A stretch of 64,000 bases of DNA from NCBI GenBank assembly GCA_002269645.1, contig NIVC01001722.1, positions 160,072 to 224,071 on the forward strand. Direction: 5' to 3'. Position 1 is the stretch's first letter, and each line of letters starts with the position of its first letter. The notes beneath the pieces are model-generated. The model ran no database searches. It had not been told where the DNA came from and saw only the letters and a list, made by a program, of their open reading frames with translations. Of this stretch, positions 1 to 49,755 are shown in pieces. Position numbers and translations under genes: made by a program. This DNA comes from Macrostomum lignano (taxonomy: Eukaryota).

Positions 1-3000
1 GAAGAAGCACATTCGTAAAGACTATGTAGAATCCCAATAGGACTGGCGCGATGTAGCGGCCCCAGGAGTCTGGACAGCCGGTCATGTTTAGCCTGCAGGC
101 GTCCGCTGAAAATATGATATAATTTCTATGGCTTATGAAAAGTTTAGCAACGATACGAAAACATCGGGGTCAGGCTGGTACAACGGGGTCAGATGAGACC
201 ATACTGTCAGGGCATGAAACCATACTGTCAGAGCATGAGACCATACTGTCAGGGCATGAGACCATACTGTCAGGGCATGAAACCATACTGTCAGGGCATG
301 AGACCATACTGTCAGGGCATGAAACCATACTGTCAGGGCATGAGACCATACTGTCAGGGCATGAGACCATACTGTCAGGGCATGAGACCATACTGTCAGG
401 GCATGAAACCATACTGTCAGGGCATGAGACCATACTGTCAGGGCATGAGACCATACTGTCAGTACATGAGACCATACTGTCAGTACATGAGACCATCGGG
501 TCAGGACATGTACTGTCAGGAGATGACGAATCAGTGAGTCAGTTGTCGCCAGCAGCTGAGGTCCAGATTCGAACTTACACAGCGTGGAAACTGAAAACGA
601 GTCAAATCGAAGTGATTGAGTTTATTTTTACGGTGCCACAGAAGCCGAGTTATTTAATTTGCGGAAAATCTGCTCTCAAGCTCTCACCTTCGCCGCTGAT
701 GTAGCCAACTTGTAGTTCGCCAAATGACTCAAAGTAAGCCAGCTTGAGCAGGCTCATCACAGCGTCCATCGCTCCGCCCATGTCCGGCGTGGACATTGGG
801 AAGATTGTGCTCCACACAAACACTCCGTAGCCAACAACAAAGACCATGAATATGACCATGAACGGGATGAGGTCCTCAATGATCTGGTTGGAGATGTGCG
901 GGATTTGAGGCGATCAGTTTGAGTCATAGGCCTTCCCTTGTCGTGTGATCTAATAGTCTAATCTGGATGATGAGTCACTAATGATCTGGATGATGACTCA
1001 CTAATGATCTGGATGATGACTCACTAATGATCAGGATGATGACTCACTAATGATCTGGATGATGACTCACTAATGATCTGGATTATGACTCACTAATGAT
1101 CTGGATGATGACTCACTAATGATCTGAATGATGACTTACTAATGATCTGGATGATGACTCACTAATGATCTGGATGATGACTCACTAATGATCTGGATGA
1201 TGACTCACTAACGATCTGAATGATGACTCACTAACGATCTGAATGATGACTCACTAATGATCTAGATTATGACTCACTAATGATCTGGATGATGACTCAC
1301 TAATGATCTGGATAATGACTCACTAATGATCTGGATGATGACTCACTAATGATCTGGATAATGACTCACTAATGATCTGGATGATGACTCACTAATGATC
1401 TGGATGATGACTCACTAATGATCTGGATGATGACTCACTAATGATCTGGATGATGACTCACTAATGATCTAGATTATGACTCACTAATGAACTAGATTAT
1501 GACTCACTAATGATCTAGATTTTTTTATTAGAGGCAGGGGGGTTGTGTGCACCCTGGCGCACTTTAAGCGACATATGGACACAACCGGCGAGAGGCATTA
1601 CTGCCCATTCCGCCGACTCCCCTGAGCAGGCATACAAGCGCGCGGATACGTACGCAGGCACACACTCACACAGGAATGTACAGCGGCCCTAACTTTATAT
1701 TATCGTTAGGCATGTACACTTCACTGCGCCTTGGGGGGTTGGCTCTCAAGGCCGTTAATTGCACGAGCAGAGCCAAGTCGAGATTCCAATTCAGCCCCAA
1801 ATTAATGTGACTGCACTTGGAATCGAGCCTGGGTCGCTGGCACACCAGAGCAGCTGCGCTACCGCTGGGCTACGGCCCCCCTTAATGATCTAGATTGTGA
1901 CTCACTAATGATCTGAATGATGACTCACTAATGATCTAGATTATGACTCTCTAATGATCTGGATGATGACTCACTAATGATCTAGATTATGACTCACTAA
2001 TGATCTGAATGATGACTTACTAATGATTTGGATGATGACTCAATAATTATCTGGATTATGACTCACTAATGACTCACCACAGTCTAACTAATGACTCACC
2101 GCAGTCTAACCAATGACTCACCATGGTCTGAATCATGACCACCTTTGGTCCCAGGTTGACATGCACGGAGAAATTCTGCAGCAGTCGGCAGAAATAGAAG
2201 AACAGCGCCAGGCCGAGCAGGATCCGGCAGATTCGCATCATCTTCACGGAGCCGGTGTCCAGTGCGCTGCCCGAGGTGTCCACGCCGAAGATGGAGTCAG
2301 GCAGGCCGGGCACGAACCGCAGACCAAACACGATGGCAGCAAGAGTGAAAATCGCCATTGAGGCAAAGTCCATCAGGTTCCAGCCTTTAGCCAGGTGGTC
2401 AGCGACTGACTCGCCGCTCACCAGCAGCTGCTTCACGGCTTCAACCATGAAGGACAGCACGAAAACGGCTAGCAGCAGCTGGAGTGGGTTCCACGACTGA
2501 GTAGCGTTGCCCACCGTGAATAGAAGGACGTACGAGTACAAGCATAGGAAGCCTGCGTAAGCAACCTGCGAGTTGGGGAGCGGCGATTGGCTCTCTGCGT
2601 AGATCCAGCTGATTGGCTCTTCTCTCCCCAACTCAATGCTGATTGGCTCTTCTCTCCCCAACTCGATGCTGATTGGCTCTTCTCTCCCCAACTCGATGCT
2701 GATTGGCTCTTCTCTCCCCAACTCAATGCTGATTGGCTCTTCTCTCCCCAACTCGATGCTGATTGGCTCTTCTCTCCCCAACTCGATGCTGATTGGCTCT
2801 TCTCTCCCCAACTCGAAGCTGATTGGCTCTTCTCTCCCCAATTCAATGCTGATTGGCTCTGCTCGTCCCAACTCAATGCTGATTGGCTCTGCTCTCCCCA
2901 ACTCGATGCTGATTGGCTCTTCTCTTCCCAACTCGATCCTGATTGGCTCCGTACTTACTGTAAGTACTAAGTACAAACTCATAAATCTTTAAAAGGCCAG

Positions 3001-6000
3001 CCCAGCCGCATGCGCTCACCGAGGTGTACAGAAAGCGCACCATAGGCGTGGCGTAGAAGTCGTAGGTGTCGCAGACCATCCTGCTGCACAGGCCGTGCCG
3101 CTGCTCTGACGACTTTGGCTTTGCGGCGACGTTCGCAGCTCCGCTGCCCGGCTTTTGCACTTCCAACGGCAAGGCCGAGGATTCCTGCTGAGATTTTGCA
3201 CGCGTTGTAGTCGTACATAAACTTCCATTTCTAACAGTGTTCTCCATTTTCTTGACTTTTATCCATTTCAACCTGATTCTCCCGATGTCAACCTGATTCT
3301 CCCGATGTCTACCTGATTCTCCCGATGTCTACCTGATTCTCCCGATGTCTACCCAACTCTCCCGATGTCAACCTGATTCTCCCGATGTCTACCCGATTCT
3401 CCCGATGTCTACCTGATTCTCCCGATGTCTACCTGATTCTCCCGATGTCTACCTGATTCTCCCGATGTCTACCAGATTCTCCCGATGTCTACCTGATTCT
3501 CCCGATGTCTACCAGATTCTCCCGATGTCTACCTGATTCTCCCGATGTCTACCCGATTCTCCCGATGTCTACCTGATTCTCCCGATGTCTACCCGATTCT
3601 CCCGATGTCTACCCAACTCTCCCGATGTCAACCTGATTCTCCCGATGTCTACCCGATTCTCCCGATGTCTACCTGATTCTCCCGATGTCTACCTGATTCT
3701 CCCGATGTCTACCTGATTCTCCCGATGTCTACCAGATTCTCCCGATGTCTACCTGATTCTCCCGATGTCTACCAGATTCTCCCGATGTCTACCTGATTCT
3801 CCCGATGTCTACCCGATTCTCCCGATGTCTACCTGATTCTCCCGATGTCTACCTGATTCTCCCGATGTCTACCCGATTCTCCCGATGTCTACCTGATTCT
3901 CCCGATGTCTACCCGATTCTCCCGATGTCTACCAGATTCTCCCGATGTCTACCAGATTCTCCCGATGTCTACCTGATTCTCCCGATGTCTACCTGATCCT
4001 CCCGATGTCTACCTGATCCTCCCGATGTCTACCTGATTCTCCCGATGTCTACCCGATTCTCCCGATGTCTACCCGATTCTCCCGATGTCTACCCGATTCT
4101 CCCGATGTCTACCCGATTCTCCCGATGTCTACCTGATTCTCCCGATGTCTACCTGATTCTCCCGATGTCTACCTGATTCTCCCGATGTCTACCTGATTCT
4201 CCCGATGTCTACCTGATTCTCCCGATGTCTACCCGATTCTCCCGATGTCTACCCGATTCTCCCGATGTCTACCCGATTCTCCCGATGTCTACCCGATTCT
4301 CCCGATGTCTACCTGATTCTCCCGATGTCTACCCGATTCTCCCGATGTCTACCTGATTCTCCCGATGTCTACCCGATTCTCCCGATGTCCACCCGATTCT
4401 CCCGATGTCTACCTGATTCTCCCGATGTCTACCCAATTCCCCAACTTCTGTCGACTTTCCTCTCCACCCAATCATCCCCACCTCCCCACCAGCTCTCACC
4501 TGATGGTTCCCACCGTCTCTGCGGCCGCCCGGCCGCCGAACCAGCAGCTGCAGCAGCGGCCCCACAAACCAGGGTGCTGAGCAGCCAACAAGGCCGACCA
4601 GCAGGAACTGCAGTCCGCTCAGGTGACCGACAATCCGGCCGCGCCACATCATGTCGAGCAGATTCTGGCAGCTGGGATGCGCGATGAAGCTCAGCGAAGT
4701 GCCCTCGGCGGCCAGCTCGAAGGAGGTCGCCCCGCCGAAGGTGTGCAGCCGCCTGACAACCGTCATGCTGGCCAGGCGGGCCTCCTCAGCCCAGCAGTCA
4801 TTGAGTACTTCGACAGCGAGCTGCTCGAAGCGGGTGGCCTGCAGGTCGAGCTCCGCCCGCATCTGCACGCTGTCGCAGCAGGCCCGGGCCCGCCGGAGCA
4901 CCAGGGCGGCTAGCAGAGCGGACGGGATGATCTCGCGCTGGTGCAGGCAGAAGGCCTGGGCGAGGCCGAACCGGCCAGTCAGCAGGCACCACAGGGTGGC
5001 CCGCAGGCCGCCGGACAGGCCGGATTCGATGAGGTGGCCGGGCCGGGTCAGCAGGTGCACCGCGGCCTCGACGTCAGCCTGGTTGACCGTGTGGCTGGTG
5101 CTGGCCGAGCTGGGAGACGCTCTGGACCCGCTGCGCTTGGCCACCAGGCGCTTGAAGATGCCGCAGCTCTGGTGGGTTGGGTGGATTGTGGATTGGGTGG
5201 GTTGGGTGGATTGGGTGGGTTGTGTGGGTTGGGTGGATTGTGGCTTGGGTGGGTTGTGTGGGTTGGGTGGATTGTGGATTGGGTGGCTTGGGTGGGTTGG
5301 GTGGATTGGGTGGATTGTGGATTGGGTGGCTTAAGTGGCTTGGGTGGATTGTGGATTGGGTGGCTTGGGTGGCTTGGGTGGCTTGGGTGGATTGTGGATT
5401 GGGTGGCTTGGGTGGGTTGGGTGGATTGGGTGGATTGTGGATTGGGTGGCTTGAGTGGCTTGGGTGGATTGTGGATTGGGTGGCTTGGGTGGCTTGGGTG
5501 GGTTGGGTGGGTTGGGTGGGTTGGGTGGGTTGGGTGGGTTGGGTGGGTTGGGTGGGTTGGGTGGGTTGGGTGGGTTGGGTGGGTTGGGTGGGTTGGGTGG
5601 GTTGTGGATTGGGTGGCTTGGGTGGGTTGGGTGGGTTGGGTGGATTGTGGATTGGGTGGGTTGGGTGGGTTGGGTGGGTTGGGTGGGTTGTGGATTGGGT
5701 GGCTTGGGTGGGTTGGGTGGATTGGGTGGATTGTGGATTGGGTGGCTTGGGTGGGTTGGGTGGCTTGGGTGGGTTGTGGATTGGGTGGCTTGGGTGGGTT
5801 GGGTGGATTGGGTGGATTGTGGATTGGGTGGCTTGGGTGGGTTGGGTGGCTTGGGTGGGTTGGGTGGATTGTGGATTGGGTGGATTGTGGATTGGGTGGC
5901 TTGGGTGGGTTGGGTGGATTGTGGATTGGGTGGATTGTGGATTGGGTGGCTTGGGTGGATTGGGTGGGTTGGGTGGGTTGGGTGGATTGTGGATTGGGTG

Positions 6001-9000
6001 GCTTGGGTGGGTTGGGTGGATTGTGGATTGGGTGGCTTGGGTGGGTTGGGTGGATTGTGGATTGGGTGGATTGTGGATTGGGTGGCTTGGGTGGGTTGGG
6101 TGGATTGTGGATTGGGTGGCTTGGGTGGGTTGGGTGGATTGTGGATTGGGTGGCTTGGGTGGGTTGGGTGGGTTTTGAGGGTTAATGGGTGACTTTAGAT
6201 CAGGTCAGTAAAATCCTTACAAAGTCCTCCGCCATGGACATGCCGTACAGCTCCAGCATCAGCGAGTCCTTCACGTAGGCGTTCAAGCTGAAGCCCTGCT
6301 CCACCATCAGCTCGGCGAACTCCGTCTGGTTGTCCCGCAGAGCCTGCAGCATCAGCGGCTCCAGGTCGTTTTGCTGGAGTGGCGGCGGGTTGAAGAATGT
6401 TTGCATCCGCCCCCGATCCTAATTCTCATCCGCCCCCGATCCTAATTCTCATCCGCCCCCGATCCTAATTCTCATCCGCCCCCGATCCTAATTCTCATCC
6501 GCCCCCGATCCTAATTCTCATCCGCCCCAGATCCTAATTCCTATCCGTCCCCCGATCCTAACTCTCATCCGCCCCCGATCCTAATGCTCATCCGCCCCCG
6601 ATCCTAATTTTCATCCGCCCCCGATCCTAACTCTCATCCGCCCCCGATCCTAATGCTCATCCGCCCCCGATCCTAATGCTCATCCGCCCCCGATCCTAAT
6701 GCTCATCCGCCCCGATCCTAATTTTCATCCGCCCCCGATCCTAACTCTCATCCGCCCCCGATCCTAATGCTCATCCGCCCCCGATCCTAACTCTCATCCG
6801 CCCCCGATCCTAATTTTCATCCGCCCCCGATCCTAACTCTCATCCGCCCCCGATCCTAATGCTCATCCGCCCCCGATCCTAACTCTCATCCGTCCCCGAT
6901 CCTAACTCTCATCCGCCCCCGATCCTAACTCTCATCCGCCCCTAGTTAATGTCTTTATCTGCCCCTAGTTAGTATCCATATCCGCTCCTAGTTAGTATCT
7001 TTATCCGCCCTAGTTAGTATCTTTATCCACCCCTAGTTAGTATCTTTTTCCACCCCTAGTTAGTATCTTTATCCACCCCTAGTTAGTATCTTTATTCACC
7101 CTTAGTTAGTATCTTTATCCGCCCCTAGTTATTGTCTTTATCCGCCCTAGTTAGTATCTTTATCCACCCCTAGTTAGTATCTTTATGCACCCCTAGTTAG
7201 TATCTTTATCCACCCCTAGTTAGTATCTTTATCCACCCCTAGTTAGTATCTTTATCCACCCCTAGTTAGTATCTTTATGCACCCCTAGTTAGTATCTTTA
7301 TCCACCCCTAGTTAGTATCTTTATCCACCCCTAGTTAGTATCTTTATCCACCCCTAGTTAGTATCTTTATCCACCCCTAGTTAGTATCTTTATCCACCCC
7401 TAGTTAGTATCTTTATCCAACCCTAGTTAGTATCTTTATCCACCCCTAGTTAGTATCTTTATCCAACCCTAATGAGTATCCATATCCGCCCCTAATGAGT
7501 ATCCATATCCGCCCCTAATGAGTATCAGCTCACAGTCCATTTCTTGGCATCCGTGAGGATCTTAGTCCTAGCAATGTCGCAGCGATCGATGGACATTGCA
7601 ATGCGCAGCTGGTCCACATTCAAGACCTCCGAGTCTTCGCCCGCGGCTTTTTCGCCGTTGCCACCGGCGTCGTCTCCTGCAGACTGCGGCATTCCCAGCA
7701 GCGAGGCGAGAATCTTGGCGTCGAAGTCGGATGCCATGTCGTCCTCGACTGAGAACACCTCGATGAGGTGCTGCGCGGCGGCGATCTCCATCAGCATGGA
7801 GACCTCCGGCTTCGGGGCCTCCTGATCGCCGCAGAGCCATTTCTGCAGCGTCACGCTGGCGAGGACCTCCGGGCTGGCGGTGCGCAGAGCCGGATTGTCG
7901 ATGCGAATCTCGCCGCTCAGCAGGTCAAGCAGGTAGCAGACCGCGTCGGCCAGGCCGCCGGAGCCGCGAACCAGCACAGCGGAGCAGTGGCGGAGCACCA
8001 GGCATCTGGATGGCGACGGGCGGTAATAGACATTAGATTATTTTCGGAGATTCCAAGAGAGAACCCGAATTTTATAAATAGAAACACGGAGTTCTTTAGT
8101 CAGTATCCAGAATATCCAATCAGAGACAAGAGGAGTGCTATAAATAGAAACACGGAGTTTTCTATTCATTTTCCAGTCTATCCAATCAGATTCAAGTGGG
8201 GAGCTATAAATAGAAACAAAGAGTTATTTAGCACGTAGTCAGTATCCAGCCTATCCAATCGGAGTCAAGTGGAAAAGCTAAAAATAGAAACGCGGGAATC
8301 CCTAGCAAATTTTCGATCAGATGAAAAGTCTGCAAGTATGAAAAGGCTTGAGCATTTAATTCCAACGAATATGGAGCTCGATATGTAGCTCAACAAACCT
8401 ATGCAGGCTGACCACATCGTCCAGCGTTCCGTTGGCCAGGATGCAGCAGGCCGGCGCCTGCGGCATCGATTCGTCTAAGCGGCTGAGCAGGGTTTCAATT
8501 CGAGTTCGAACTTCAACTACCGTGTCGGTCTCGGCGTTGTCGTCGACCATCAGGAAGAAGTTGTGGTTGGGATCAAGGCCAGGCAAAGATCCTGGCACGG
8601 CTGGCGGTGGCTGGTTTGATAAGCCCTGTTTGTTTGAAGTTAAAAAATATAATTTCTTACATTTCTACTTTCAGTAGTTTAATAGGTTTTTTTCAGATTT
8701 TTAAATTAGCAATTATATAAAAGGAAAATTGTAATAAAAATTCAATGCTGACCGTGAAGTCTTTGCTGACTAGTTCGGAACGCGAAGGCACCCATTTCCA
8801 TGGCAACACTGCCAGCAGGCTGATCCTATCCTGTCCGTAGGCTTCATTGTAGTCTCTGACCGCCTTGCCAGCCAGTTTAACAATGCCTTTGCTCAGGCCA
8901 TCCGTCACCACCAGAGAGTCTAAGTAGGGAAATTGAAAGAGATATTGGGCCTGGGGAATCTGTGCAAAGGTTTCAGAGAGACTGTCCGCTTGGTCCTTCA

Positions 9001-12000
9001 ATCATGTAAGCGACAGGGAGACTGTGTCCGCTTGGTCCTTCAATCATGTAAGCTACAGGGAGACTGTGTCCGCTTGGTCCTTCAATCATGTAAGCTACAG
9101 GGAGACTGTGTCCGCTTGGTCCTTCAATCATGTAAGCTACAGGGAGACTGTGTCCGCTTGGTCCTTCAATCATGTAAGCTACAGGGAGACTGTGTCCGCT
9201 TGGTCCTTCAATCGTGTAAGCTACAGGGAGACTGTGTCCGCTTGGTCCTTCAATCATGTAAGCTACAGGGAGACTGTGTCCGCTTGGTCCTTCAATCATG
9301 TAAGCTACAGAGAGACTGTGTCCGCTTGGTCTTTTAATCATGTAAGCTACAGGGAGACTGTGTCCGCTTGGTCCTTCAATCATGTAAGCTACAGGGAGAC
9401 TGTGTCCGCTTGGTCCTTTAATCATGTAAGCTACAGGGAGACTGTGTCCGCTTGGTCCTTTAATCATGTAAGCTACAGGGAGACTGTGTCCGCTTGGTCC
9501 TTCAATCATGTAAGCTACAGGGAGACTGTGTCCGCTTGGTCCTTTAATCATGTAAGCTACAGGGAGACTGTGTCCGCTTGGTCCTTCAATCATGTAAGCT
9601 ACAGGGAGACTGTGTCTGCTTGGTCCTTCAATCATGTAAGCTACAGGGAGACTGTGTCCGCTTGGTCCTTTAATCATGTAAGCTACAGGGATTCTGTCCT
9701 TCAGGCAACTGAGTCTCACTTGAGCAGCCGGCCGCCTTCCAGAAGCCCTTCATAAAGACTTTGTTAAAGTCGGTGCGGGTTGACTGCCCGCCCAAGACCG
9801 TCACAATCATGGAGGGCTGCCGGATGCCCCAGACTTTGTGCAGCAGCCACAACAGCTGGGCGTCTTCGGTGAAGCTGGAGATGCGGACGAACTTCGCAAG
9901 GAGGAAACGGGGATTTGCGATGGTTCAATTGCAGCTGCAGGCAGAATAAACATTGAAAAGTGCACACACTGCACACTGCACACACTGCACACTGCACACA
10001 CTGCACACTGCACACACTGCACACTGCACACACTGCACACTGCACACACTGCACACTGCACACACTGCACACTGCACACACTGCACACTGCACACACTGC
10101 ACACTGCACACACTGCACACTGCACACACTGCACACTGCACACACTGCACACTGCACACACTGCACACACTGCACACTGCACACACTGCACACTGCACAC
10201 AATGCACACTGCACACTGCACACAATGCACACTGCACACTGCACACAATGCACACTGCACACTGCACACTGCACACTGAACACACTGCACACTGCACATA
10301 CTGCACACTGCACACTGCACACACTGCACACTGCACACTGCACACTACACATACTGCACACGACACACACTGCACACACTGCACACTGCACACACTGCAC
10401 ACTGCACACACTGCACACTGCACACACTGCACACTGCACACACTGCACACTGCACACACTGCACACTGCACACACTGCACACTGCACACACTGCACACTG
10501 CACACACTGCACACTGCACACAATGCACACTGCACACCGCACACAATGCACACTGCACACAATGCACACTGCACACTGCACACAATGCACACTGCACACT
10601 GCACACTGCACAATGCACACTGCACACCGCACACAATGCACACTGCACACAATGCACACTGCACACTGCACACAATGCACACTGCACACTGCACACTGCA
10701 CACTGAACACACTGCACACTGCACATACTGCACACTGCACACTGCACACACTGCACACTGCACACTGCACACTACACATACTGCACACGACACACACTGC
10801 ACACACTGCACACTGCACACTGCACACTACACACACTGCACACACTGCACACACTGTACACACTGAGCACACTGCACACACTGCACACAAGAAGTAAATC
10901 GCAGCGCACTTTGGCAGAAAAGTAGTCGGACATCTTCAAGCTGCCGAAAGCGTTGGTGACAACGGGCATCAGGTGGGTCTCGGCCGACCAGCTGCCGACT
11001 TCCAAGGAAACGAGCGAGGAGTGCTCAAAGTACAGGTGCTCGTCCTGTGGCAGTCCGCAGTGGCACAGGCCCTCGGCTCTGGGGTGACGAAGTGACAAGG
11101 AATGATCTGCCACCTGGGCTGCACTGAATGACCTGTCCACTCACTGAATGACCTGTCCAATCACTGAATGACCTGTCCAATCACTGAATGACCTGTCGAA
11201 TCACTGAATGACCTGTCCACTCACTGAATGACTTGTCCAATCACTGAATGACCTGTCCACTCACTGAATGACCTGTCCAATCACTGAATGACCTGTCCAA
11301 TCACTGAATGACCTGTCCACTCACTGAATGACCTGTCCAATCACTGAATGACCTGTCCAATCACTGAATGACCTGTCCAATCACTGAATGACCTGTCCAC
11401 TCACTGAATGACTTGTCCAATCACTGAATGACCTGTCCAATCACTGAATGACCTGTCCACTCACTGAATGACCTGTCCACTCACTGAATGACCTGTCCAA
11501 TCACTGAATGACCTGTCCAATCACTGAATGACCTGTCCACCACTGAATGACCTGTCCACTCACTGAATGACCTGTCCACTCACTGAATGACTTTATCACA
11601 CCCTGAATGACTTGCCCACTCACTGAATGACTTGCCCACTCACTGAATGACTTGCCCACTCACTGAATGACTTGCCCACTCACTGAATGACTTGCCCACT
11701 CACTGAATGACTTGCCCACTCACTGAATGACTTGCCCACTCACTGAATGACTTGCCCACTCACTGAATGACTTGCCCACTCACTGAATGACTTGCCCACT
11801 CACTGAATGACTTGTCCACTCACTGAATGACTTGCCCACTCACTGAATGACTTGTCCACTCACTGAATGACTTGCCCACTCACTGAATGACTTGCCCACT
11901 CACTGAATGACTTGCCCACTCACTGAATGACTTGTCCACTCACTGAATGACTTGCCCACTCACTGAATGAACTGTCCACTCACTGAATGACTTGCCCACT

Positions 12001-15000
12001 CACTGAATGACTTGCCCACTCACTGAATGACCTGTCCACTCACTGAATGACCTGTCCAATCACTGAATGACTTGCCCACTCACTGAATGACTTGCCCACT
12101 CACTGAATGACTTGTCCACTCACTGAATGACTTGCCCACTTACTGAATGACTTGTCCACTCACTGAATGACTTGTCCACTCACTGAATGACTTGTCCACT
12201 CACTGAATGACTTGCCCACTCACTGAATGACTTGCCCACTCACTGAATGACTTGCCCACTCACTGAATGACTTGCCCACTCACTGAATGACTTGCCCACT
12301 CACTGAATGACCTGTCCACTCACTGAATGACCTGTCCAATCACTGAATGACCTGTCCAATCACTGAATGACCTGTCCACCACTGAATGACCTGTCCACTC
12401 ACTGAATGACCTGTCCACTCACTGAATGACTTTATCACACCCTGAATGACTTGCCCACTCACTGAATGACTTGCCCACTCACTGAATGACTTGTCCACTC
12501 ACTGAATGACTTGCCCACTCACTGAATGACTTGTCCACTCACTGAATGACTTGCCCACTCACTGAATGACTTGTCCACTCACTGAATGACTTGCCCACTC
12601 ACTGAATGACTTGCCCACTCACTGAATGACTTGCCCACTCACTGAATGACTTGCCCACTCACTGAATGACTTGCCCACTCACTGAATGACTTGCCCACTC
12701 ACTGAATGACTTGCCCACTCACTGAATGACTTGTCCACTCACTGAATGACTTGCCCACTCACTGAATGACTTGTCCACTCACTGAATGACTTGCCCACTC
12801 ACTGAATGACTTGTCCACTCACTGAATGACTTGCCCACTCACTAAATGACTTGCCCACTCACTGAATGACTTGCCCACTCACTGAATGACTTGCCCACTC
12901 ACTGAATGACTTGTCCACTCACTGAATGACTTGCCCACTCACTGAATGACTTGTCCACTCACTGAATGACTTGCCCACTCACTGAATGACTTGTCCACTC
13001 ACTGAATGACTTGCCCACTCACTGAATGACTTGCCCACTCACTGAATGACTTGTCCACTCACTGAATGACTTGCCCACTCACTGAATGACTTGTCCACTC
13101 ACTGAATGACTTGCCCACTCACTGAATGACTTGCCCACTCACTGAATGACTTGCCCACTCACTGAATGACTTGCCCACTCACTGAATGATGACTGAACCT
13201 AATCCTTGATGTACTACTGTTAATAAAGATCCTGTGATGTGTGTCGAGATTAAGATGGCAAGCGGTGCAAAGTTATGTATTTGACGGTAGAATCAGGAAT
13301 CTTGAGCGCATAGCTCTAGGCGGGGTCTTGAGAGGTTGAAGGGCTGAAACCGAGAGGGGAGCTCTGCGAAAGAAAGAGTATACTGCCATAGACTTACTAA
13401 ACAATAACAAAACGAAAGTTGAGCGAAGCTTAAGTCACATAATACACAACATAGACAGAAAAACAAAAATGCACTGAAGCAATAGGCTGAGCTCTAATGC
13501 ACATCCTGCATTACCTTTCAACAAACCTGCAGCACTCCCTCACATCCAGGCACCTGTGCTCGAAGAAGGCGCTGCTCATCTGCGAGAAAAAAATGGACAA
13601 AATGCCAAGAGGCTGGCTTGATGCACATGCCTGGAGCCTACTTGGCTCGTATAGCGCATGTAGCTGTGAACAGCGAACTTACGGTTTGGTACAGGCTGAT
13701 TAATTTTTTAACCTCACTGCGCTTGTTTGCCAGGTCTACCGGTGTCTTGCCGTCCTGAATAGATTGGAAACCGAGTGCTTATCTGTATGGCATTACGGGT
13801 ACTGTACTGTACACACTCGGAGCACACTGTACTGTACACACACACGGAGCACACTGCTGTACACACACTCGGAGCACACTGTACTGTACACACACACGGA
13901 GCACACTGCTGTACACACACACGGAGCACACTGTACTGTACACACTCGGAGCACACTGTACTGTACACACACTCGGAGCACACTGCTGTACACACACTAG
14001 GAGCACACTGCTGTACACACACTCGGAGCACACTGTTGTACACACACTAGGAGCACACTGCTGTACACACACTCGGAGCACACTGCTGTACACACACTAG
14101 GAGCACACTGCTGTACACACACTAGGAGCACACTGCTGTACACACACTAGGAGCACACTGCTGTACACACACTAGGAGCACACTGCTGTACACACACTCG
14201 GAGCACACTGCTGTACACACACTCGGAGCACACTCCTGTACACACACTCGGAGCACACTGCTGTACACACACTCGGAGCACACTGCTGTACACACACTAG
14301 GAGCACACTGCTGTACACACACTCGGAGCACACTGCTGTACACACACTCGGAGCACACTGCTGTACACACTCACGGAGCACACTGTACTGTACACACACT
14401 CGGAGCACACCATACTGTACACACACTCGGAGCACACTGTACTGTACACACACTCGGAGCACACTGTACTGTACACACACTAGGAGCACACTGTACTGTA
14501 CACACACTAGGAGCACACTGTACTGTACACACACTCGGAGCACACTGTACTGTACACACACTAGGAGCACACTGTACTGTACACACACTAGGAGCACACT
14601 GCTGTACACACACTCGGAGCACACTGCTGTACACACACTAGGAGCACACTGCTGTACACACACTAGGAGCACACTGCTGTACACACACTAGGAGCACACT
14701 GCTGTACACACACTAGGAGCACACTGCTGTACACACACTCGGAGCACACTGCTGTACACACACTCGGAGCACACTCCTGTACACACACTCGGAGCACACT
14801 GCTGTACACACACTCGGAGCACACTGCTGTACACACACTAGGAGCACACTGCTGTACACACACTCGGAGCACACTGCTGTACACACACTCGGAGCACACT
14901 GCTGTACACACTCACGGAGCACACTGTACTGTACACACACTCGGAGCACACCATACTGTACACACACTCGGAGCACACTGTACTGTACACACACTCGGAG

Positions 15001-17625
15001 CACACTGTACTGTACACACACTAGGAGCACACTGTACTGTACACACACTAGGAGCACACTGTACTGTACACACACTCGGAGCACACTGTACTGTACACAC
15101 ACTAGGAGCACACTGTACTGTACACACACTCGGAGCACACTGTACTGTACACACACTCGGAGCACACTGTACTGTACACACACTCGGAGCACACTGTACT
15201 GTACACACACTAGGAGCACACTGTACTGTACACACACTCGGAGCACACTGTACTGTACACGCACTCGGAGCACACTGTACTGTACACACACTCGGAGCAC
15301 ACCATACTGTACACGCACTCGGAGCACACTGTACTGTACACACACACAACTACTACTAAGCTACTAATTTATCACGAATTTGTACTTTAACAGTTGCACT
15401 CACCCTGTTTCTGACCATCCAGTCGAGCCGATCAATCAGGCACAGCTGGGCTACACAGGCCGGGCCGGCCGCTGCGGCCAGGTGGCACGGCGTGTTACCA
15501 TGGCGATCGGCCACCTCGGACTGGCGCGGGATCCGCCTGGCCAGCTGGCGCACCAGGAACGGATTGCCAACCAGACAGGCCAGGTGCAGCGGCGTCTCCC
15601 CGTCCTGAGGAGTCATTTAGAGTGAAGAGTAAAACACTTTACTGTCTATGAACAGGTTTCTTAGAAAGTTTTGGAGGCTTATATGGACAGAGCACCATAG
15701 ACAACAAAAACCATTCTTGCTGAAACCCCTTGAAGAGGTACTGGCGCCTCCTCTGAAGCTGGCACTCCTCTGTTGCTGGCGCCCCCTCTGTAGCTGGTGC
15801 CCCCCCTGTAGCTGGTGCCCCATTGTAGCTGGTGCCCCCCTGTAACTGGTGGCCCCCTGTAGCTGGTGGCCCCCTGTAGCTGGCGCCCCCTCTGTAGCTG
15901 GCGCAACTTTCTGTTAGCTGGCGCCCTTTTCTGTAGCTGGTGCCAACCTCTGTATCTGGCGCCCCTCTGTAGCTGGCGCCCCCCCCCCCTTGGAGTAGCT
16001 GGTGCCCCCTGTAGCTGGTGTCCCATTGTAGCTGGTGGCCCTCTGTAGCTGGTGCCCCCCTGTAGCTGGTGCCCCCCCTGTAACTGGTGGCCCCCTGTAG
16101 CTGGTGGCCCCCTGTAGCTGGCGCCCCCTCTGTAGCTGGCGCAACTTTCTGTTAGCTGGCGCCCTTTTCTGTAGCTGGTGCCAACCTCTGTATCTGGCGC
16201 CCCTCTGTAGCTGGCGCCCCCCCCCCCCCCTTGGAGTAGCTGGTGCCCCCCTGTAGCTGGTGTCCCATTGTAGCTGGTGGCCCTCTGTAGCTGGTGCCCC
16301 CCTGTAGCTGGTGCCCCCCCTGTAACTGGTGGCCCCCTGTAGCTGGTGGCCCCCTGTAGCTGGTGCCCCCCCTGTAGCTGGTGCCCCCCTGTAGCTGGTG
16401 CCCCCCCCTGTAGCTGGTGCCCCTTCTGAAGTTGCAACTCACAGCGGTGAGCGGCGCGGGCTCGCCGGGTCGGCAGTAATCAAGCAGGAGGCTCATCGTT
16501 GTCGGGCTGTCGATAGCAGCGGCCAGGTGCAGCAGGGTGCAGCAGTTGACGGCTGAGCGATTTGGAAGCTGGAATGGACCATATAGCTGAGTTCGTAGAT
16601 AGCTGGGATGTCTGCAGTGTCTGTGAGTGAGGCACAGTGTCTGTGAGTGAAGCACAGTCTGTGAGGGGGGCGCAGTGTCTATGGGAATGAGGTGCAGTGT
16701 CTATGAGAGGGGCGGAGTATCTATGGGAATGAGGCACAGTGTATGTTGAGGGGGAGCGCAGTGTCTATGGGAATGAGGTGCAGTGTCTGTGAGGAGGCGC
16801 AGTATCTATGGGAATGAGGTGCAGTGTCTGAGTGAGTGAGGTGCAGTGTCTATGGGAATGAGGTGCAGTGTCTGTGAGGGGGGCGCAGTGTCTAATGGGA
16901 ATGAGGTGCAGTGTCTGTGAGAGGGGCGCAGTGTCTATGGGAATGAGGTGCAGTGTCTGTGAGGAGGCGCAGTGTCTAATGGGAATGAGGTGCAGTGTCT
17001 GTGAGAGGGGCGCAGTGTCTATGGGAATGAGGTGCAGTGTCTGTGAGAAGGGCGCAGTGTCTAATGGGAATGAGGTGCAGTGTCTGTGAGAAGGGCGCAG
17101 TGTCTAATGGGAATGAGGTGCAGTGTCTGTGAGAAGGGCGCAGTGTCTAATGGGAATGAGGTGCAGTGTCTGTGAGAAGGGCGCAGTGTCTAATGGGAAT
17201 GAGGTGCAGTGTCTGTGAGAAGGGCGCAGTGTCTAATGGGAATGAGGTGCAGTGTCTGTGAGAGGGGCGCAGTGTCTGTGAGGAGGCGCAGTGTCTGTGA
17301 GAGGGGCGCAGTGTCTGTGAGGAGGCGCAGTGTCTATGGGAGTAAAGTTAAAGTCTTTCCACCGTTGACAAAGCGGAGCCTGGAGCGAGGCGCTCACCTG
17401 AATCCGGTCGGACTTGTACATGAAGGACATCTCCAGCATGCCGGCAGCCACCGCGGTCTGCAGTCTGCCTGGGGTCAGCTCATCAGCTTCAATCTCGCTA
17501 ACTACGGCCTGCAGATCCCCGGCGGGCAGATTATTCCCATACTCCTCCAGATCCCGCAGCTTCAGACTGGAGTCGCTGCAGTTGAGCTCGGACATGACTA
17601 AACTCACCGTGTGCTCGTCGGACAT
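1..17625 (-). CDS. TRPM: TRPM-family cation channel with N-terminal ankyrin repeats; 3' end lies beyond the left edge
   Basis: Exons (minus): 17625-17398, 16568-16443, 15604-15404, 13754-13683, 13579-13515, 11078-10910, 9891-9720, 8919-8753, 8625-8399, 8005-7534, 6373-6221, 5168-4500, ~3187-3020 (acceptor could be 3184), 2565-2122, 883-688, 105-<1. All introns are GT..AG and phases are mutually consistent (about 1210 codons). TRPM motifs: RECCRFVE..LCHCG, WSAETH..TNAFG, IVTVLGG, LDPNHNFFLMVDD, LEPLMLQALRDNQTEFAELMVEQG, FIAHPSCQNLLDMMWRG, YATPMVRF, LGPKVVMIQTM, pore YFESFGE, S6 PVLLGFYIVFTNVLL. Ankyrin motifs: TLLHLAA, GETPLHLA, GNTPCHLA, GKTPVDLA. Confidence 0.9.
190..500. repeat. Intronic 21-bp minisatellite (CATGAGACCATACTGTCAGGG)n
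   Basis: About 14 tandem copies read directly. Confidence 0.95.
958..2100. repeat. Intronic 23-bp minisatellite (GATCTGGATGATGACTCACTAAT)n, interrupted by a SINE
   Basis: Tandem copies on both sides of 1520-1881. Confidence 0.95.
1520..1881 (-). mobile_element. tRNA-derived SINE, about 360 bp, inserted in an intronic minisatellite
   Basis: Minus-strand head GGGGGCCGTAGCCCAGCGGTAGCGC...GGCTCGATTCC has pol III A and B boxes; 3' end AATAAAAAAA; flanked by TAATGATCTAGATT at 1508-1521 and 1883-1896. Confidence 0.8.
2608..2950. repeat. Intronic 30-bp minisatellite (GCTGATTGGCTCTTCTCTCCCCAACTCGAT)n
   Basis: About 11 copies; explains the ISIELGREEP repeat in ORF 2074-2982. Confidence 0.95.
3270..4435. 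repeat. Intronic 20-bp minisatellite (ACCTGATTCTCCCGATGTCT)n
   Basis: About 58 copies. Confidence 0.95.
5171..6175. repeat. Intronic G-rich array of GGGTGG(G/C/A)TT and GTGGATT units
   Basis: Fills intron 5169-6220. Confidence 0.95.
6405..7525. repeat. Two abutting related 23-bp arrays (CCGCCCCCGATCCTAATTCTCAT, then CCACCCCTAGTTAGTATCTTTAT)
   Basis: Unit type switches near 6940. Confidence 0.95.
8975..9690. repeat. Intronic 42-bp minisatellite
   Basis: GGGAGACTGTGTCCGCTTGGTCCTTCAATCATGTAAGCTACA, about 17 copies. Confidence 0.95.
9960..10890. repeat. Intronic (CTGCACA/CTGCACACA)n simple repeat
   Basis: Fills intron 9892-10909. Confidence 0.95.
11120..13190. repeat. Intronic 20-bp minisatellite (CACTGAATGACTTGCCCACT)n
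   Basis: About 100 copies. Confidence 0.95.
13800..15345. repeat. Intronic 25/27-bp minisatellite (GGAGCACACTG(C/TA)TGTACACACACT(A/C))n
   Basis: Fills intron 13755-15403. Confidence 0.95.
15770..16425. repeat. Intronic ~16-19-bp array (CCCCTGTAGCTGGTGC)n
   Basis: Includes a 238-bp higher-order duplication. Confidence 0.9.
16610..17340. repeat. Intronic dimeric array based on GCAGTGTCT (GCAGTGTCTATGGGAATGAGGT / GCAGTGTCTGTGAGAGGGGC)
   Basis: Fills intron 16569-17397. Confidence 0.9.
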
Positions 17626-18254: not shown

Positions 18255-19965
18255 ATACTTCGGTTGCTCACTCAACAACTCGGATTGGACACTCAGCAAC
18301 TCTGGTTGCTCACTCAGCAACTCTGATTGGACACTCAGCAACTCGGATTGGACACTCAGCAACTCTGGTTGCTCACTCAGCAACTCTGATTGGACACTCA
18401 GCAACTCGGATTGGACACTCAGCAACTCTGGTTGCTCACTCAACAACTCGGATTGGACACTCAGCAACTCTGATTGGACACTCAGCAACTCTGATTGGAC
18501 ACTCAGCAACTCTGGTTGCTCACTCAGCAACTCTGATTGGACACTCAGCAACTCGGATTGGACACTCAGCAACTCTGGTTGCTCACTCAGCAACTCTGAT
18601 TGGACACTCAGCAACTCGGATTGGACACTCAGCAACTCTGGTTGCTCACTCAGCAACTCTGATTGGACACTCAGCAACTCTGGTTGCTCACTCAGCAACT
18701 CTGATTGGACACTCAGCAACTCGGATTGGACACTCAGCAACTCTGGTTGCTCACTCAGCAACTCTGATTGGACACTCAGCAACTCGGATTGGACACTCAG
18801 CAACTCGGGTTGCTCACTCAGCAACTCTGGTTGCTCACTCAGCAACTCTGATTGGACACTCAGCAACTCGGATTGGACACTCAGCAACTCTGGTTGCTCA
18901 CTCAGCAACTCTGATTGGACACTCAGCAACTCGGATTGGACACTCAGCAACTCTGGTTGCTCACTCAGCAACTCTGATTGGACACTCAGCAACTCTGATT
19001 GGACACTCAGCAATTCTTGTTGTACACTCAGCAACTCGGATTGGACACTCAGCAACTCTGGTTGCTCACTCAGCAACTCTGATTGGACACTCAGCAACTC
19101 TGGTTGCTCACTCAGCAACTCTGGTTGCTCACTCAGCAACTCGGATTGGACACTCAGCAACTCAGATCGGACACTCAGCAACTCGGATCGGACACTCAGC
19201 AACTCGGATTGGGCACTCAGCAACTCTGGTTGCTCACTCAACAACTCGGATTGGACACTCAGCAATTCTTGTTGTACACTCAGCAACTCGGATTGGACAC
19301 TCAGCAACTCGGATCGGACACTCAGCAACTCGGATTGGGCACTCAGCAACTCGGATTGCTCACTCAGCAACTCGGATTGCTCACTCAGCAACTCGGATTG
19401 GACACTCAGCAACTCGGGTTGCTCACTCAGCAACTCTGGTTGCTCACTCAGCAACTCGGATTGGACACTCAGCAACTCAGATCGGACACTCAGCAACTCG
19501 GATCGGACACTCAGCAACTCGGATTGGGCACTCAGCAACTCTGGTTGTACACTCAGCAACTCGGATTGGACACTCAGCAACTCTGGTTGCTCACTCAGCA
19601 ACTCTGGTTGCTCACTCAGCAACTCGGATTGGACACTCAGCAACTCAGATCGGACACTCAGCAACTCGGATCGGACACTCAGCAACTCGGATTGGGCACT
19701 CAGCAACTCGGATTGCTCACTCAGCAACTCTGATTGGACACTCAGCAATTCTTGTTGTACACTCAGCAACTCGGATTGGGCACTCAGCAACTCGGATTGC
19801 TCACTCAGCAACTCTGATTGGACACTCAGCAACTCGGGTTGCTCACTCAGCAACTCTGATTGGACACTCAGCAACTCGGATTGCTCACTCAGCAACTCTG
19901 ATTGGACACTCAGCAACTCGGGTTGCTCACTCAGCAACTCATGTTGTACACTCAGCAACTCATGT
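18255..19965. repeat. Intergenic 21-bp minisatellite (CTCAGCAACTCGGATTGGACA)n
   Basis: About 80 copies; source of the 578/579-aa spurious ORFs. Confidence 0.95.
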
Positions 19966-21231: not shown

Positions 21232-23967
21232 TCAAGCGACGCCTGGCAACATGGAGGCGAGCAGGGCGCAGAGGCACAGCGCAAAGGCCAGGCTCAGCAG
21301 CAGCCGCAGGCAGCGGGCGGAGCCGCGAGCTGGGCGGGCAGCAGTCGGGCGGCCCCAGCCGCGCAGGCGAAACCAGGTGACGCACTCGGTCAAATCGTTG
21401 CTAACGGTGGGCTGGTAGCCCAGCGCATCGGCGGCGGCGGCCACGCTAAAATAATGCGTGACGCCGGTTTTGCACACCTCGGCTCTGGTTAGCCAGGGCT
21501 CGAACTCCAGGCCGAGCCGGTTAGCAACGGAGTGGGCCAGTTCGGCTAGCCAGGCCAGGCCATAGACAGCGTGATACGGCGCCGCCAGGCAGGGCGTCGG
21601 GTAGCCGAGGCCGCCGGCCAGCTTGGCGAAGAAGTCGAAATTCGGCGTCGGCGCACCGTCGGAGAGGAAGAAGGCGCGGCCGGCGACGCGGCGATCACCA
21701 AGCAGCAGGCGGTCGGCGGCCTTCACGTGACCCTTCCAGGGCGGCGGGCAGTGGCGGTTTTTGTTAGCGCGATGCTTGCTAAGCCTAATTCATATTTATA
21801 TACAATTTTAACCGGCTCTTTCTTAGAAATGTGCTTTCTTAGAAAATCTCGAAACTCCCCATCTTTTGACGTAGAAAGTAAAACTAAAACCTGACAGCTC
21901 TGGTTTCATAGAAAGGCCTTAAATTTTTCTAAGAAACAACGTTATTCTTTAGTAGAATTTTTTCTAGGCCCCAATTTCTTAGAAACTTTGAACGTCTTCC
22001 GAAATCTCTTTTTTTAAAATAAAAATTATGCATCCGTTTTTCGTAGAAAATTTTGTTTAAATTCTTCTACTTTCTTAGAAATAATCATAAATCAGAGATA
22101 AGTGAATATTCCTAGAAAGTTGCCGCCTCACCTGCACCAAATTGTCGATGTGCAGAAAGTCCACGTCGGCCTGTCGCAGGCCCAGCGCACGCGGAATGCG
22201 CCGACGGCCATGAAACCGACGGCGCGCGGCAGGTGACGCTGCTCGCCGGGGCCATAGACTCCGGCTAGGCGGAGAGCGCAGGTGAGCAGGCCTGAGTTCG
22301 AGTTGGCGGACAGCACCAGCTGCTCAGCCTCGCTTTTGGTTCGGCTGTACGCGTCCACGTGCTGAGCGGGGGCGATAGGGAATTATCAATAGGCGATTTT
22401 ACTAATAGGCGATTTTTCTAATAGGCGATTTTTCAAAATGCAATTTTTCAAGGCGATTTTTCTGATAGGTGATTTTTCTAAAAAACGATTTTTCTGATAG
22501 GCGACTTTTCTAATAGGCGATTTTACTAATGGGGATTTTTCTAATAGGCGATTTTTCTTAAACGGCGATTTTTCAAGGCGATTTTTCTACAAGGCGATTT
22601 TCTGATAGGTGATTTTTCTAAAAGGCGATTTTTCTGATAGGCGATTTTTCTAAAAGGCAATTCTTTCAGCTCGTACATCCAATTTTTATTTTAGGCGATT
22701 TCATAGCCAGCGGTGTTTTTATTAGCCGCTTTTAATTATAGGCAAAGTAGTTCAGCGGTGACGCGGCTGGCTCTCGTCGCAGGTCATTGTAAGAAATTCA
22801 GGACCCCGTGTACACCCCGTGTGAGTGTGTGCGAACTGGCCGTGACTGCTCGCCTCCTCCTTGCTGACTGTCATTAGGCTGTCCGTGCCTCATGGCCTCT
22901 CCGTCCATCGAATTCGACTTCGGCAGCCGCTAACTTAACGATTTCAAAGACTTTTCAATCATAAGCCTGCGAGCTCACCCGATCCATCGGCAGATACGGC
23001 AGGGTCTCGTCGCCGTTGCGAATCTCCTGCCCGCCGAACACCACATTGTAGGTGCTCGTGTACACCAGGGCCTTCACGCCGTGCTTCTGGCAGGCTGCCG
23101 TTTAAATAAAGATTGGCCATTTGCACTGATCTCTCTGCACCCTCGATGACCTGCCCGATCTCTCTGTACCCTCTATGACCTGTCCGATCTATCTGCACCC
23201 TCTATGACCTGCCAGATCTCTCTGCACCCTCTATGACCTGCCCGATCTCTCTGCACCCTCTATGACCTGCCCGATCTCTCTGCACCCTCTATGACCTGCC
23301 GATCTCTCTGCACCCTCTATGACCTGCCCGATCTCTCTGCACCCTCTATGACCTGCCCGATCTCTCTGCACCCTCTATGACCTGCCCGATCTCTCTGCAC
23401 CCTCTATGACCTGTCCGATCTATCTGCACCATCTATGACCTGCCCGATCTCTCTGCACCCTCTATGACCTGCCTGATCTCTCTGCACCCTGACCTTCAGA
23501 TCTCTCCGCACCTTGGTCCTTATACCTTCCTTGCTTTCCGCACGTACCCGCAATGACATTCCGAGTGCCAACCACATTAACAGCGTAGATCTTGTCCTTC
23601 TTCAGCTGCAAGTTGCAACGATATTGAAGTGTTGATACTGAATGGCAACAAAAAAGTTTACACAGGCATCTCCTACCATCTCGCCGCCCGACATGCCAAA
23701 AGAAGCTACGTGGAAAACGCAATCATATCCAGCAGAAACAGCCCGGTCCACGTCTTTGAGCTTGGCGACGTCAACCTGCACGCGCTTGAACTTGCTATCG
23801 TCCGAGCTGAACCGCAAGTCAGCAAGGCTGACAGAATCTCCGCGAGCCGCCAGAACCTGGGCAAGACTTTGGCCAACATAGCCGCCTCCGCCAGTGATAA
23901 GGAATCGGTGGCTGGGCGCCGACAGACGGTTGCTAAGGGCGCTGCTGCTGCGCAATTCGACAGGCAT
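21232..23967 (-). CDS. SDR42E1: SDR42E1-like extended short-chain dehydrogenase (3-beta-HSD family), about 398 aa after correcting one frameshift
   Basis: Exons 23967-23677, 23605-23548, 23094-22979, 22361-22132, 21732-21232. Rossmann motif TGGGGYVG, HVASFGMSG, YTSTYNVVFGGQEIRNGDETLPY, catalytic YSRTK, RLAGVYGPGEQRHLPR, DFLHIDNLVQ, AFFLSDG, VTHYFS, C-terminal hydrophobic helix. Exon 4 is 230 nt and needs one extra base near 22181-22183. Confidence 0.88.
22385..22700. repeat. Degenerate ~17-bp intronic array (TTTTCTAATAGGCGAT)
   Basis: Located in SDR42E1 intron 22362-22978. Confidence 0.8.
22741..22925 (+). mobile_element. Degenerate, internally deleted tRNA-SINE relative
   Basis: A-box-like GTAGTTCAGCGGTGACGCGGCTG and GTACACCCCGTGTGAGTGTGTGC resemble the head and body of the 1520-1881 SINE. 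Confidence 0.4.
23125..23500. repeat. Intronic 29-bp minisatellite (GACCTGCCCGATCTCTCTGCACCCTCTAT)n
   Basis: Located in SDR42E1 intron 23095-23547. Confidence 0.95.
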
Positions 23968-24060
23968 TGTCGAATATCGATTACTTTAAATAACTTCTGT
24001 ACCTTTTGTATTAATTGAAATTTTTCAGCTGAAAATTTTCATTAAGACCATAGTATAAAC

Positions 24061-28400: not shown

Positions 28401-29193
28401 TGGCCGAGGAGCCGCTGCCCTCAACCTTGGCTTGCTGCTGTTGCTGCCGGCTCTGGCGCCGCCGCTGGCCCGGCTCGCCGACGTCAATGAAGAATCCACC
28501 ACTGCGGCGTCTGGAGGCGAAAAATGAAGCATTGGAGCCTTGCTGCTTTGGTTTTTAATTAGTGTTTCACAGATTATAAGCTGGCGCCACATCCAATTTC
28601 CTAGATTTCAGCTGGCGCCACATCTATATCCCTAGATTTCGGCTGGCGCCACAGCCAATTCCATAGATTTCGGTAGGGCCACAGCCAATTCCATAGATTT
28701 CGGTTGGCGCCGCAGCCAACTGCCTAGATTTCAGTTGGCGCCACATCTATATCCTAGATTTCAGTTGGCGCCACATCTACATCCTAGATTTCCGTTGGCG
28801 CCACACCTATATCCTAGCTTTCGATTGGCGCCACATCTATATCCTAGATTTCAGTTGGCGCCACATCTATATCCTAGATTTCAGTTGGCGCCACATCTAT
28901 ATCCTAAACTTCAGTTGGCGCCACATCTATATCCTAGATTTCGGTTGGCGCCACAGCAAATTCTCTAGATTTCGGTTGGCGCCAAAAACCTCTCCCAACA
29001 GATTTCCCGTGAGCTCCATCAACTGAGTTGGAAAACATCAATCAAGAGGTCGCCCCAGAACGCACCTGATCAGCTCTGCCGTGGTCTGTTCTGGCAGCAA
29101 ATTATCAACATCTCGAGACAATTTGCGCCAAGTCTTCTTTTTATTTCTTGATAATCTCAGCCGCTTGGCTGCTGGCTTAGCCGGGTCGGCCAT
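25491..29193 (-). CDS. NOP53: Ribosome biogenesis protein NOP53 (GLTSCR2/PICT1), about 431 aa
   Basis: Exons 29193-29066, 28510-27787, 25934-25491, phase-consistent. N-terminal SRNKKKTWRK, AIM-like GFFIDVG, middle YNPSLADHEAML, C-terminal KRLGRHRFEEPEAEFKLADELAPSLRQLRPEGDLFVDAVKSYQRRSMLEPR typical of Nop53. Confidence 0.88.
26240..26337 (+). mobile_element. Diverged fragment of the same SINE family (3' half)
   Basis: ACATGCCT..AGGGCCGCTGTACA..GTGAG..CTTGTATG..GGAGTCAGTGGAATTGGCAGTA aligns by eye with the 3' half of the 1520-1881 SINE. Confidence 0.55.
26588..27391. mobile_element. Solo-LTR-like segment in a NOP53 intron
   Basis: Bounded by TGTGA...TCACA, with internal TATA-like and ATTAAA signals; no matching TSD found. 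Confidence 0.25.
28580..28985. repeat. Intronic 30-bp minisatellite (TTGGCGCCACATCTATATCCTAGATTTCAG)n
   Basis: Located in NOP53 intron 28511-29065. Confidence 0.9.

Positions 29194-37382: not shown

Positions 37383-37434
<52 letters not shown>

Positions 37435-49691: not shown

Positions 49692-49755
<64 letters not shown>

Follow-up and report, generated by a model that had tools for sequence, protein, structure and literature searches.

A probable TRPM2-like channel gene with N-terminal ankyrin repeats in Macrostomum lignano and its relatives in flukes

Introduction

In evolutionary surveys, TRPM stands alone among the TRP families in lacking ankyrin repeats, and the TRPM/TRPS ancestor is inferred to have had none (PMC7306681). 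A 2026 survey of domain gains and losses in TRPM mentions neither flatworms nor an N-terminal gain of ankyrin repeats. In the flatworm literature, TRPM_MCLZ (Smp_333650), the functionally characterised schistosome target of meclonazepam, is described with N-terminal ankyrin repeat domains (PMC10788528, PMC11731825, PMC12861061) and without a SLOG domain (PMC11731825, PMC12861061), and the legend to a figure on schistosome TRPM paralogues lists ankyrin repeat domains among the annotated features (PMC11731825). Here we analyze a stretch of 64,000 nucleotides from the flatworm Macrostomum lignano (assembly GCA_002269645.1, contig NIVC01001722.1, positions 160,072 to 224,071; hereafter the window, with positions counted from its first letter). 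Judging from its sequence and that of its relatives, one minus-strand gene running from 17625 to beyond position 1 very likely encodes a TRPM2-like channel with an N-terminus of about 210 residues and four ankyrin repeats, cis-spliced from 13683 to 13579 and belonging to a flatworm clade in which ankyrin repeats precede a SLOG domain (Ank-SLOG-TRPM).

The best solved relatives of the predicted channel are TRPM2 structures from Nematostella (6co7), zebrafish (6d73/6drj) and human (6mix), with E-values from 6.5e-80 to 3e-50; the nearest are Nematostella TRPM2 (6.5e-80) and zebrafish TRPM2, and every match listed is a TRPM chain. The window gene has in common with TRPM2 a Cys-rich N-terminal segment, SLOG/MHR1-2, MHR3-4 and S1-S6. 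The solved TRPM2 chains start 30-80 residues before SLOG and have no ankyrin repeats there, whereas the window gene places about 210 residues with four repeats first. TRPM2 is gated by ADP-ribose and Ca2+.

TRPM_MCLZ resembles the window gene in being a flatworm TRPM-type channel with N-terminal ankyrin repeats, as described in the literature, but it has no SLOG/MHR1-2, consists of three exons and is called 'TRPM-like', whereas the window gene has a full SLOG behind its ankyrin repeats. Under the published definition of the TRPM_MCLZ type (ankyrin repeats without SLOG; PMC11731825), the window gene falls outside that type because SLOG is present. Ankyrin repeats N-terminal to a six-transmembrane channel also recall TRPA, TRPN, TRPV and TRPC. 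The likeness to these families is one of layout only and reflects independent acquisition: the channel core and cytosolic domains of the window gene are those of TRPM, and all strong matches are to TRPM.

Ankyrin exons and the junction intron

In the initial annotation, four minus-strand exons ahead of the channel were read as encoding three to four ankyrin repeats. Their coordinates and sequences were borne out, and each exon has a length that is a multiple of three. Coding exon 1 (17398..17625) opens with an ATG and contributes 76 codons of N-terminal segment, which align with the N-termini of ankyrin-bearing TRPM proteins from the flukes Clonorchis and Opisthorchis. Exon 2 (16443..16568) encodes ankyrin repeat 1 (..CCTLLHLAAAIDSPTTMSLLLDY..), with an Ank_2 match over residues 80-140. 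Repeats 2 and 3 (DGETPLHLA.., HGNTPCHLA..) lie in the 67 aa of exon 3 (15404..15604), and repeat 4 (DGKTPVDLANKRSEVKKLISLYQT), which aligns with KDPLEISFQ..FLALAQ of Clonorchis, in exon 4 (13683..13754). The acceptors of the ankyrin exons read CAG or TCAG and the donors, in exon order, GTGAGC, GTGAGT, GTGAGT and GTAAGT, in agreement with the M. lignano cis-splice motifs GT[G/A]AG and CAG (PMC8629364).

The ankyrin reading frame has no stop upstream of the 13683 donor. From its GTAAGT, a phase-0 intron of 103 nt (13580..13682, minus strand, ending TTTTTTTCTCGCAG) links the ankyrin and TRPM modules, and the proposed in-frame splice from 13683 to 13579 yields a stop-free product of 302 aa. Exon 5 (13515..13579, minus strand) starts the TRPM module with ATGAGC (MSSAFFEHRCLDVRECCRFVE), its ATG abutting the acceptor, and ends at a phase-2 donor (GAAAG/GTAATG; slashes in sequences mark splice boundaries). 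An earlier reading of the peptide here as ...CRFVER has to be corrected, as exon 5 joins 11123 in phase 2 to give ...CRFVES AAQ.... Pfam analysis of the 302-aa product detected Ank (1.1e-10, 41.5 bits against a cutoff of 21.1), Ank_2 (1.2e-10) and Ank_5 (1.6e-9), with the ankyrin-family matches spanning residues 80-194. Adding the exon that encodes DGKTPVDLA...LISLYQ brings the count to about four repeats.

The channel module

Downstream of the junction, we assembled the gene model from open frames and canonical splice sites. The gene comprises 16 exons within the window, and the 12 from 13579 to position 1 encode 1017 residues, ending in S6 (..YIVFTNVLL). All lie on the minus strand. The Cys-rich N-terminal TRPM segment (..CHCGLPQDEH..TNAFGSLKM..SAK) occupies exon 6 (10910..11123), and the LSDAT/SLOG region (MHR1/2) starts in exon 7 (9720..9891) and continues through exons 8 (8753..8919) and 9 (8399..8625). 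MHR2/3 lies in exon 10 (7534..8005), MHR3 in exon 11 (6221..6373), and MHR3/4, with the Pfam TRPM2-like domain, in exon 12 (4500..5168). Exon 13 (3020..3187) encodes the pre-S1 segment and the start of S1, and its NAGNAG acceptor (CAG/CAG) possibly places its start 3 nt later. S1 to the S4-S5 region follow in exon 14 (2122..2565), S5 and the pore region in exon 15 (688..883), and the pore loop and S6 in the partial exon 16 (1..105). Because exon 16 is cut at the window edge, the TRP helix and C-terminus fall outside the window.

Within the TRPM part, Pfam places LSDAT_euk (SLOG/MHR1-2) at residues 92-314 (5.5e-28, 98.5 bits, cutoff 25.7) and the TRPM2 domain PF25508 over the MHR3-4 region (4.3e-27), and residues 549-1017 align with the transmembrane regions of solved TRPM chains. 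Ion_trans did not reach an E-value of 0.01 in the window model, in which S6 is cut at the window edge, and is found in the relatives. Based on the LSDAT_euk and TRPM2 Pfam domains and on TRPM2 as the nearest structures, we assign the channel to the TRPM2-like TRPMs.

Channels of the TRPM2/4/5/8 group coordinate Ca2+ with an E-x-x-Q pair in S2. In the S2 helix of the window gene (..FMVEAVKQLL.., at about 2440), the residue three before the Gln is Ala, compared to Asn in Clonorchis and Glu in the M. lignano paralogue Mlig003066, and the N-x-x-D pair in S3 is retained (..WNLMD..). By these residues, the Ca2+ site of the window channel may be altered.

Ankyrin-bearing relatives in a paralogue and in flukes

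We searched 1.84 billion representative proteins with A0A1I8FFN3 (P0017), an older model of the same locus, screened the best 150 of the 298 matches for ankyrin repeats and confirmed positives by Pfam. Among these best 150, N-terminal ankyrin repeats ahead of LSDAT_euk occur in three TRPM relatives besides the query: KAG5447154.1 of Clonorchis sinensis (1708 aa, clustered with Opisthorchis viverrini XP_009171463.1), PAA85706.1 of M. lignano (BOX15_Mlig003066g1, 1781 aa, with two more copies, Mlig003066g1-3) and KAF8568535.1 of Paragonimus westermani (a 507-aa fragment). The Pfam check of the spliced protein and the search for proteins combining ankyrin repeats with LSDAT_euk, both suggested by the initial annotation, were thus positive: Ank_2 and LSDAT_euk were found, and such proteins exist in flatworms.

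The Mlig003066, Clonorchis, Opisthorchis and Paragonimus proteins share the domain order Ank_2, LSDAT_euk, TRPM2 and Ion_trans, and their repeats are collinear with those of the window gene. The alignment of the ankyrin region of the window gene with that of Clonorchis (57 bits, E 2e-13) begins at repeat 1 and reaches the final residue ahead of the junction. The segment N-terminal to the repeats also aligns between the window and the Clonorchis and Opisthorchis proteins, which supports exon 1 as one continuous coding exon. Divergence within the group is considerable: the TRPM model of the window gene scores 490 bits against Mlig003066 over about 1000 aa, and its N-terminal 466 residues are 23-29% identical to the others. 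Mlig003066 differs from the window gene in lacking the WI..REC..CxC segment and the junction intron, and the flukes differ by roughly 30 aa of linker that separate their last repeat from the start of TRPM.

Gene structure is shared as well. At the Mlig003066 locus (L001), exon 2 encodes 68 aa, compared to 67 aa for exon 3 of the window gene, and the two introns flanking it coincide in the alignment with those of the window (A/DGETP in the window and S/RRELP in the paralogue; R/DGKTP and S/SGRSA). Exon 3 of L001 (4771-5022) is a single open exon that contains the last ankyrin repeat together with the N-terminus of TRPM, up to ..GNTAQ/gtgagt; the paralogue therefore carries the two modules in one physical reading frame. 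The intron that follows is conserved (..A[QK]/F..): the next exon of L001 begins F-CRV, and in the window ..FSAK/gtgcgc is followed by F-VRI. In Paragonimus (L002), ankyrin exons at 5004, 7176 and 8353-8502 lie on the same strand as, and within 5 kb of, a TRPM exon at 10231. The ankyrin and TRPM exons are neighbours there, and the phase-0 intron at their junction (..MKSN/gtaagt ... tccag/PKEGSLWIP) occupies roughly the position of the 103-nt intron in the window.

Phylogeny and novelty

We next consider the origin of the ankyrin module. In a neighbour-joining (NJ) distance tree of the channel (21 sequences, 1067 well-occupied columns, 100 bootstraps), the ankyrin-bearing TRPMs, namely Mlig003066, the window gene, the Opisthorchis protein and Clonorchis KAG5447154, are monophyletic in 93/100 bootstraps. 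Their sister clade consists of long fluke TRPMs (Schistosoma spindale, 2242 aa; Clonorchis KAG5451156; Echinostoma) together with the M. lignano proteins Mlig001812 and A0A1I8HSQ2. Its members are TRPM2-like, as in the window clade, but differ in their N-termini, in which we detected no ankyrin repeats. Based on the tree grouping and the shared introns, ankyrin exons were probably placed ahead of a TRPM2-like gene in one event that predates the split of macrostomids from flukes; we treat this single gain as provisional because it is drawn from a distance tree of 21 sequences.

The novelty that the initial annotation saw in an ankyrin-bearing TRPM is overstated, since TRPM proteins with ankyrin repeats and LSDAT_euk are already public (PAA85706.1, KAG5447154.1, XP_009171463.1, KAF8568535.1) and TRPM_MCLZ has been described with ankyrin repeats. 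The Ank-SLOG-TRPM layout is real, conserved and little studied, and is present beyond this locus. Our literature search found no paper describing a clade of TRPMs with ankyrin repeats and SLOG, and the clade is apparently undescribed as such; functional studies of flatworm Ank-SLOG-TRPM proteins were not found either. By regaining canonical ankyrin repeats ahead of a complete SLOG domain, a conserved flatworm clade would cleanly illustrate domain shuffling in a channel family that has received much study.

The clade is closely related to flatworm TRPM2-like channels, and TRPM_PZQ (the praziquantel target, an ankyrin-less TRPM2-like channel) and TRPM_MCLZ are two validated anthelmintic targets. 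Other flatworm TRPM paralogues have been flagged as uncharacterised and pharmacologically interesting (PMC11731825). Ml.TRPM_PZQ as published has E1495 in its TRP helix (PMC9910428); it matched none of the M. lignano sequences used here, and none of these has a TRP helix near residue 1495. M. lignano is amenable to transgenesis, making the role of the ankyrin module directly testable.

Alternative readings of the locus

Several observations weigh against the one-gene reading of the locus. Neither cDNA nor RNA-seq evidence was found for the 13683/13579 junction, and two homologue searches returned no protein matching the locus from the later M. lignano annotation (BOX15_Mlig, PAA accessions). 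The sole public model of the locus, A0A1I8FFN3, is full of frameshifts, skips exon 4 and uses different splice sites inside exons 5 and 6. The ATG of the TRPM module abuts an acceptor about 100 nt from the preceding coding exon, like the ~100-bp spacing of operon genes that are trans-spliced to a spliced leader (SL; PMC8629364). In addition, the trematode gene models are automated predictions, and the functional role given to the ankyrin repeats is pure inference. That ankyrin repeats and TRPM form one gene has good comparative support, with paralogue and trematodes collinear and sharing intron positions, and no transcript of the locus was found.

Among these points, the homologue searches call for care. 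A search with the 302-aa fused N-terminus returned generic ankyrin proteins only and also missed the public model of the locus; a word-indexed search of this kind can miss proteins sharing long identical blocks, apparently because generic ankyrin proteins crowd the candidates, and its negatives are unreliable. The same holds for a profile of four Ank-TRPM N-termini, which was overrun by generic ankyrin proteins and failed to recover even its own members. A search with the TRPM N-terminus did recover two M. lignano UniProt models, A0A1I8FFN3 and A0A1I8FDX0, with blocks 100% identical to window exons and broken by frameshifts. A0A1I8FFN3 spans from upstream of the ankyrin ATG into TRPM and joins both exon sets, and we count it as weak support for the fusion because it skips exon 4 and uses other splice sites.

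Two differences between our model and A0A1I8FFN3 concern exon boundaries. Within exon 1, a 99-nt in-frame stretch (17507-17605, minus strand) is flanked by GTGAGT...CAG and forms an intron in the older model; we take it as coding because it aligns with the fluke N-termini, and it could be an alternative intron. The older model also splices ..FFEHR to AEGLCHCG through a donor inside exon 5 (CAG/GTGCC, ~13553) and an acceptor inside exon 6 (CCCAG/AGCC, ~11077), dropping the CLDVRECCRFVES.. segment. This splice may be an alternative form or a prediction artefact.

SL trans-splicing affects 30% of M. lignano genes, and operons contain 15%; once adjusted for repeats, the distance between genes of an operon has its peak near 100 bp, and the last three letters of the leader are ATG (PMC8629364). 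For these reasons we gave serious weight to an operon of two genes, in which an ankyrin-only gene would read through the 13683 donor to a TAG at about 13638, 15 codons further on, and the TRPM gene would be matured by SL trans-splicing at 13579 and start at its own ATG or that of the leader. The ATG abutting a pyrimidine-rich acceptor, 103 nt from the preceding exon, suits such an arrangement, and the 35-nt M. lignano leader, which we sought in the window and found absent, is uninformative either way because it is added in trans. The operon would, however, require that a strong GTAAGT donor at the end of a stop-free ankyrin frame be ignored, and by a rule quoted in PMC8629364, cis-splicing should prevail where a donor lies upstream in cis. 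The transcript would also have to end 15 codons further on and gain its poly(A) within 57 nt devoid of an AATAAA-like hexamer: from exon 4 to the 13579 acceptor the sole match is AATTAA, which lies inside exon 4 and precedes the read-through stop. The acceptor, TCGCAG, departs from the enriched trans-splice motif [T/C]TNCAG. Finally, homologous repeats sit within the TRPM frame in the paralogue, in a single exon, and in three fluke species, and together these points make two separate genes highly improbable.

Compatible with a fused gene is a two-product reading, in which the locus makes the full Ank-TRPM and also a TRPM without the ankyrin repeats that begins at the 13579 ATG, through an internal start site or occasional SL trans-splicing. 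The first codon of the TRPM module is indeed an in-frame ATG, and the N-terminal segment before the ..REC.. motif equals that of vertebrate TRPM7 in length; the frequency of SL trans-splicing in M. lignano (PMC8629364) points the same way. Against this, the Met is not conserved (Paragonimus has PKEGSLWIP, Clonorchis KESTLWIP, and the paralogue lacks the segment), and N-terminal length varies widely among ankyrin-less relatives. The 13579 ATG as a conserved ancestral TRPM start was a separate candidate, set aside because of the variable N-terminal lengths of the relatives and the unconserved Met. An ankyrin-less isoform by SL trans-splicing is possible in M. lignano and disfavoured when the 13683 donor sits upstream in cis (PMC8629364), and we regard the two-product reading as rather unlikely. 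It is scarcely credible that the ankyrin exons are a decaying or unrelated upstream gene fragment joined in frame by coincidence. In its favour, the introns are filled with minisatellites, the region is highly repetitive and the sole public model is poor, but each of the four exons is open, keeps phase 0 and has canonical sites at its boundaries, their repeats are homologous to and collinear with those of fluke TRPMs with intron positions shared with the paralogue, and the ankyrin-bearing channels group as a clade. The evidence thus argues for a single cis-spliced Ank-TRPM gene.

Proposed working of the channel

The domain order of the single Ank-TRPM gene is four ankyrin repeats, the Cys-rich segment, SLOG/MHR1-2, MHR3-4 and S1-S6. 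By comparison with its relatives, the core would form a tetrameric, non-selective cation channel of the TRPM2 type with a nucleotide-binding SLOG domain. The ankyrin repeats would sit on the outermost cytosolic domain, where they most likely serve as a module for protein-protein docking or tethering; a new sensor coupled to the pore seems less likely. The mechano-, thermo- or ligand-sensing role raised in the initial annotation is speculation that found no support in our analysis. Beyond the window, a NUDT9-like C-terminus is likely because relatives carry one: Clonorchis KAG5447154.1 has a weak precomputed Pfam match to NUDT9_N, and visual inspection of its C-terminus and the Mlig003066 one shows NUDT9-like motifs.

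A broader proposal joins these elements. The Ank-SLOG-TRPMs would constitute a distinct, undescribed flatworm subfamily that arose by one exon-shuffling event before the macrostomid-fluke split and is sister to the ankyrin-less clade, its module adding a property absent from classical TRPMs, such as tethering or partner-dependent gating, and possibly being switched off in M. lignano when SL trans-splicing brings the 13579 ATG into use. As a whole we hold this proposal only tentatively and think it somewhat doubtful.

Other features of the window

Tandem repeats make up most of the length of the Ank-TRPM gene. Twelve of its 15 introns hold their own distinct minisatellite (between 193 and 17316), with units of 7-52 nt in as many as 103 copies; the array at 11122-13189, for example, consists of 103 copies of a 20-mer. 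A further array, with 81 copies of a 21-mer, lies directly upstream of the gene at 18269-19961.

Elsewhere in the window, we observed a large inverted duplication (~37315-40681 and ~46165-49811) with arms of at least 3.4 kb that are 95-100% complementary, surrounding a centre of about 5.5 kb and carrying the same open frames on opposite strands. An assembly artefact, a palindrome or an element with long terminal inverted repeats could each account for it. Another inverted repeat, also hairpin-like (56444-56980 and 57191-57727), has 537-nt arms that are 94% complementary and 210 nt apart. Probable genes lie upstream of the Ank-TRPM gene on the same minus strand at 21235-23985, 25494-28554 and 54195-55373, and by motif reading only, the frames there resemble a short-chain dehydrogenase (3-beta-HSD-like), NOP53/GLTSCR2 and a RhoGAP (a single 393-aa frame).

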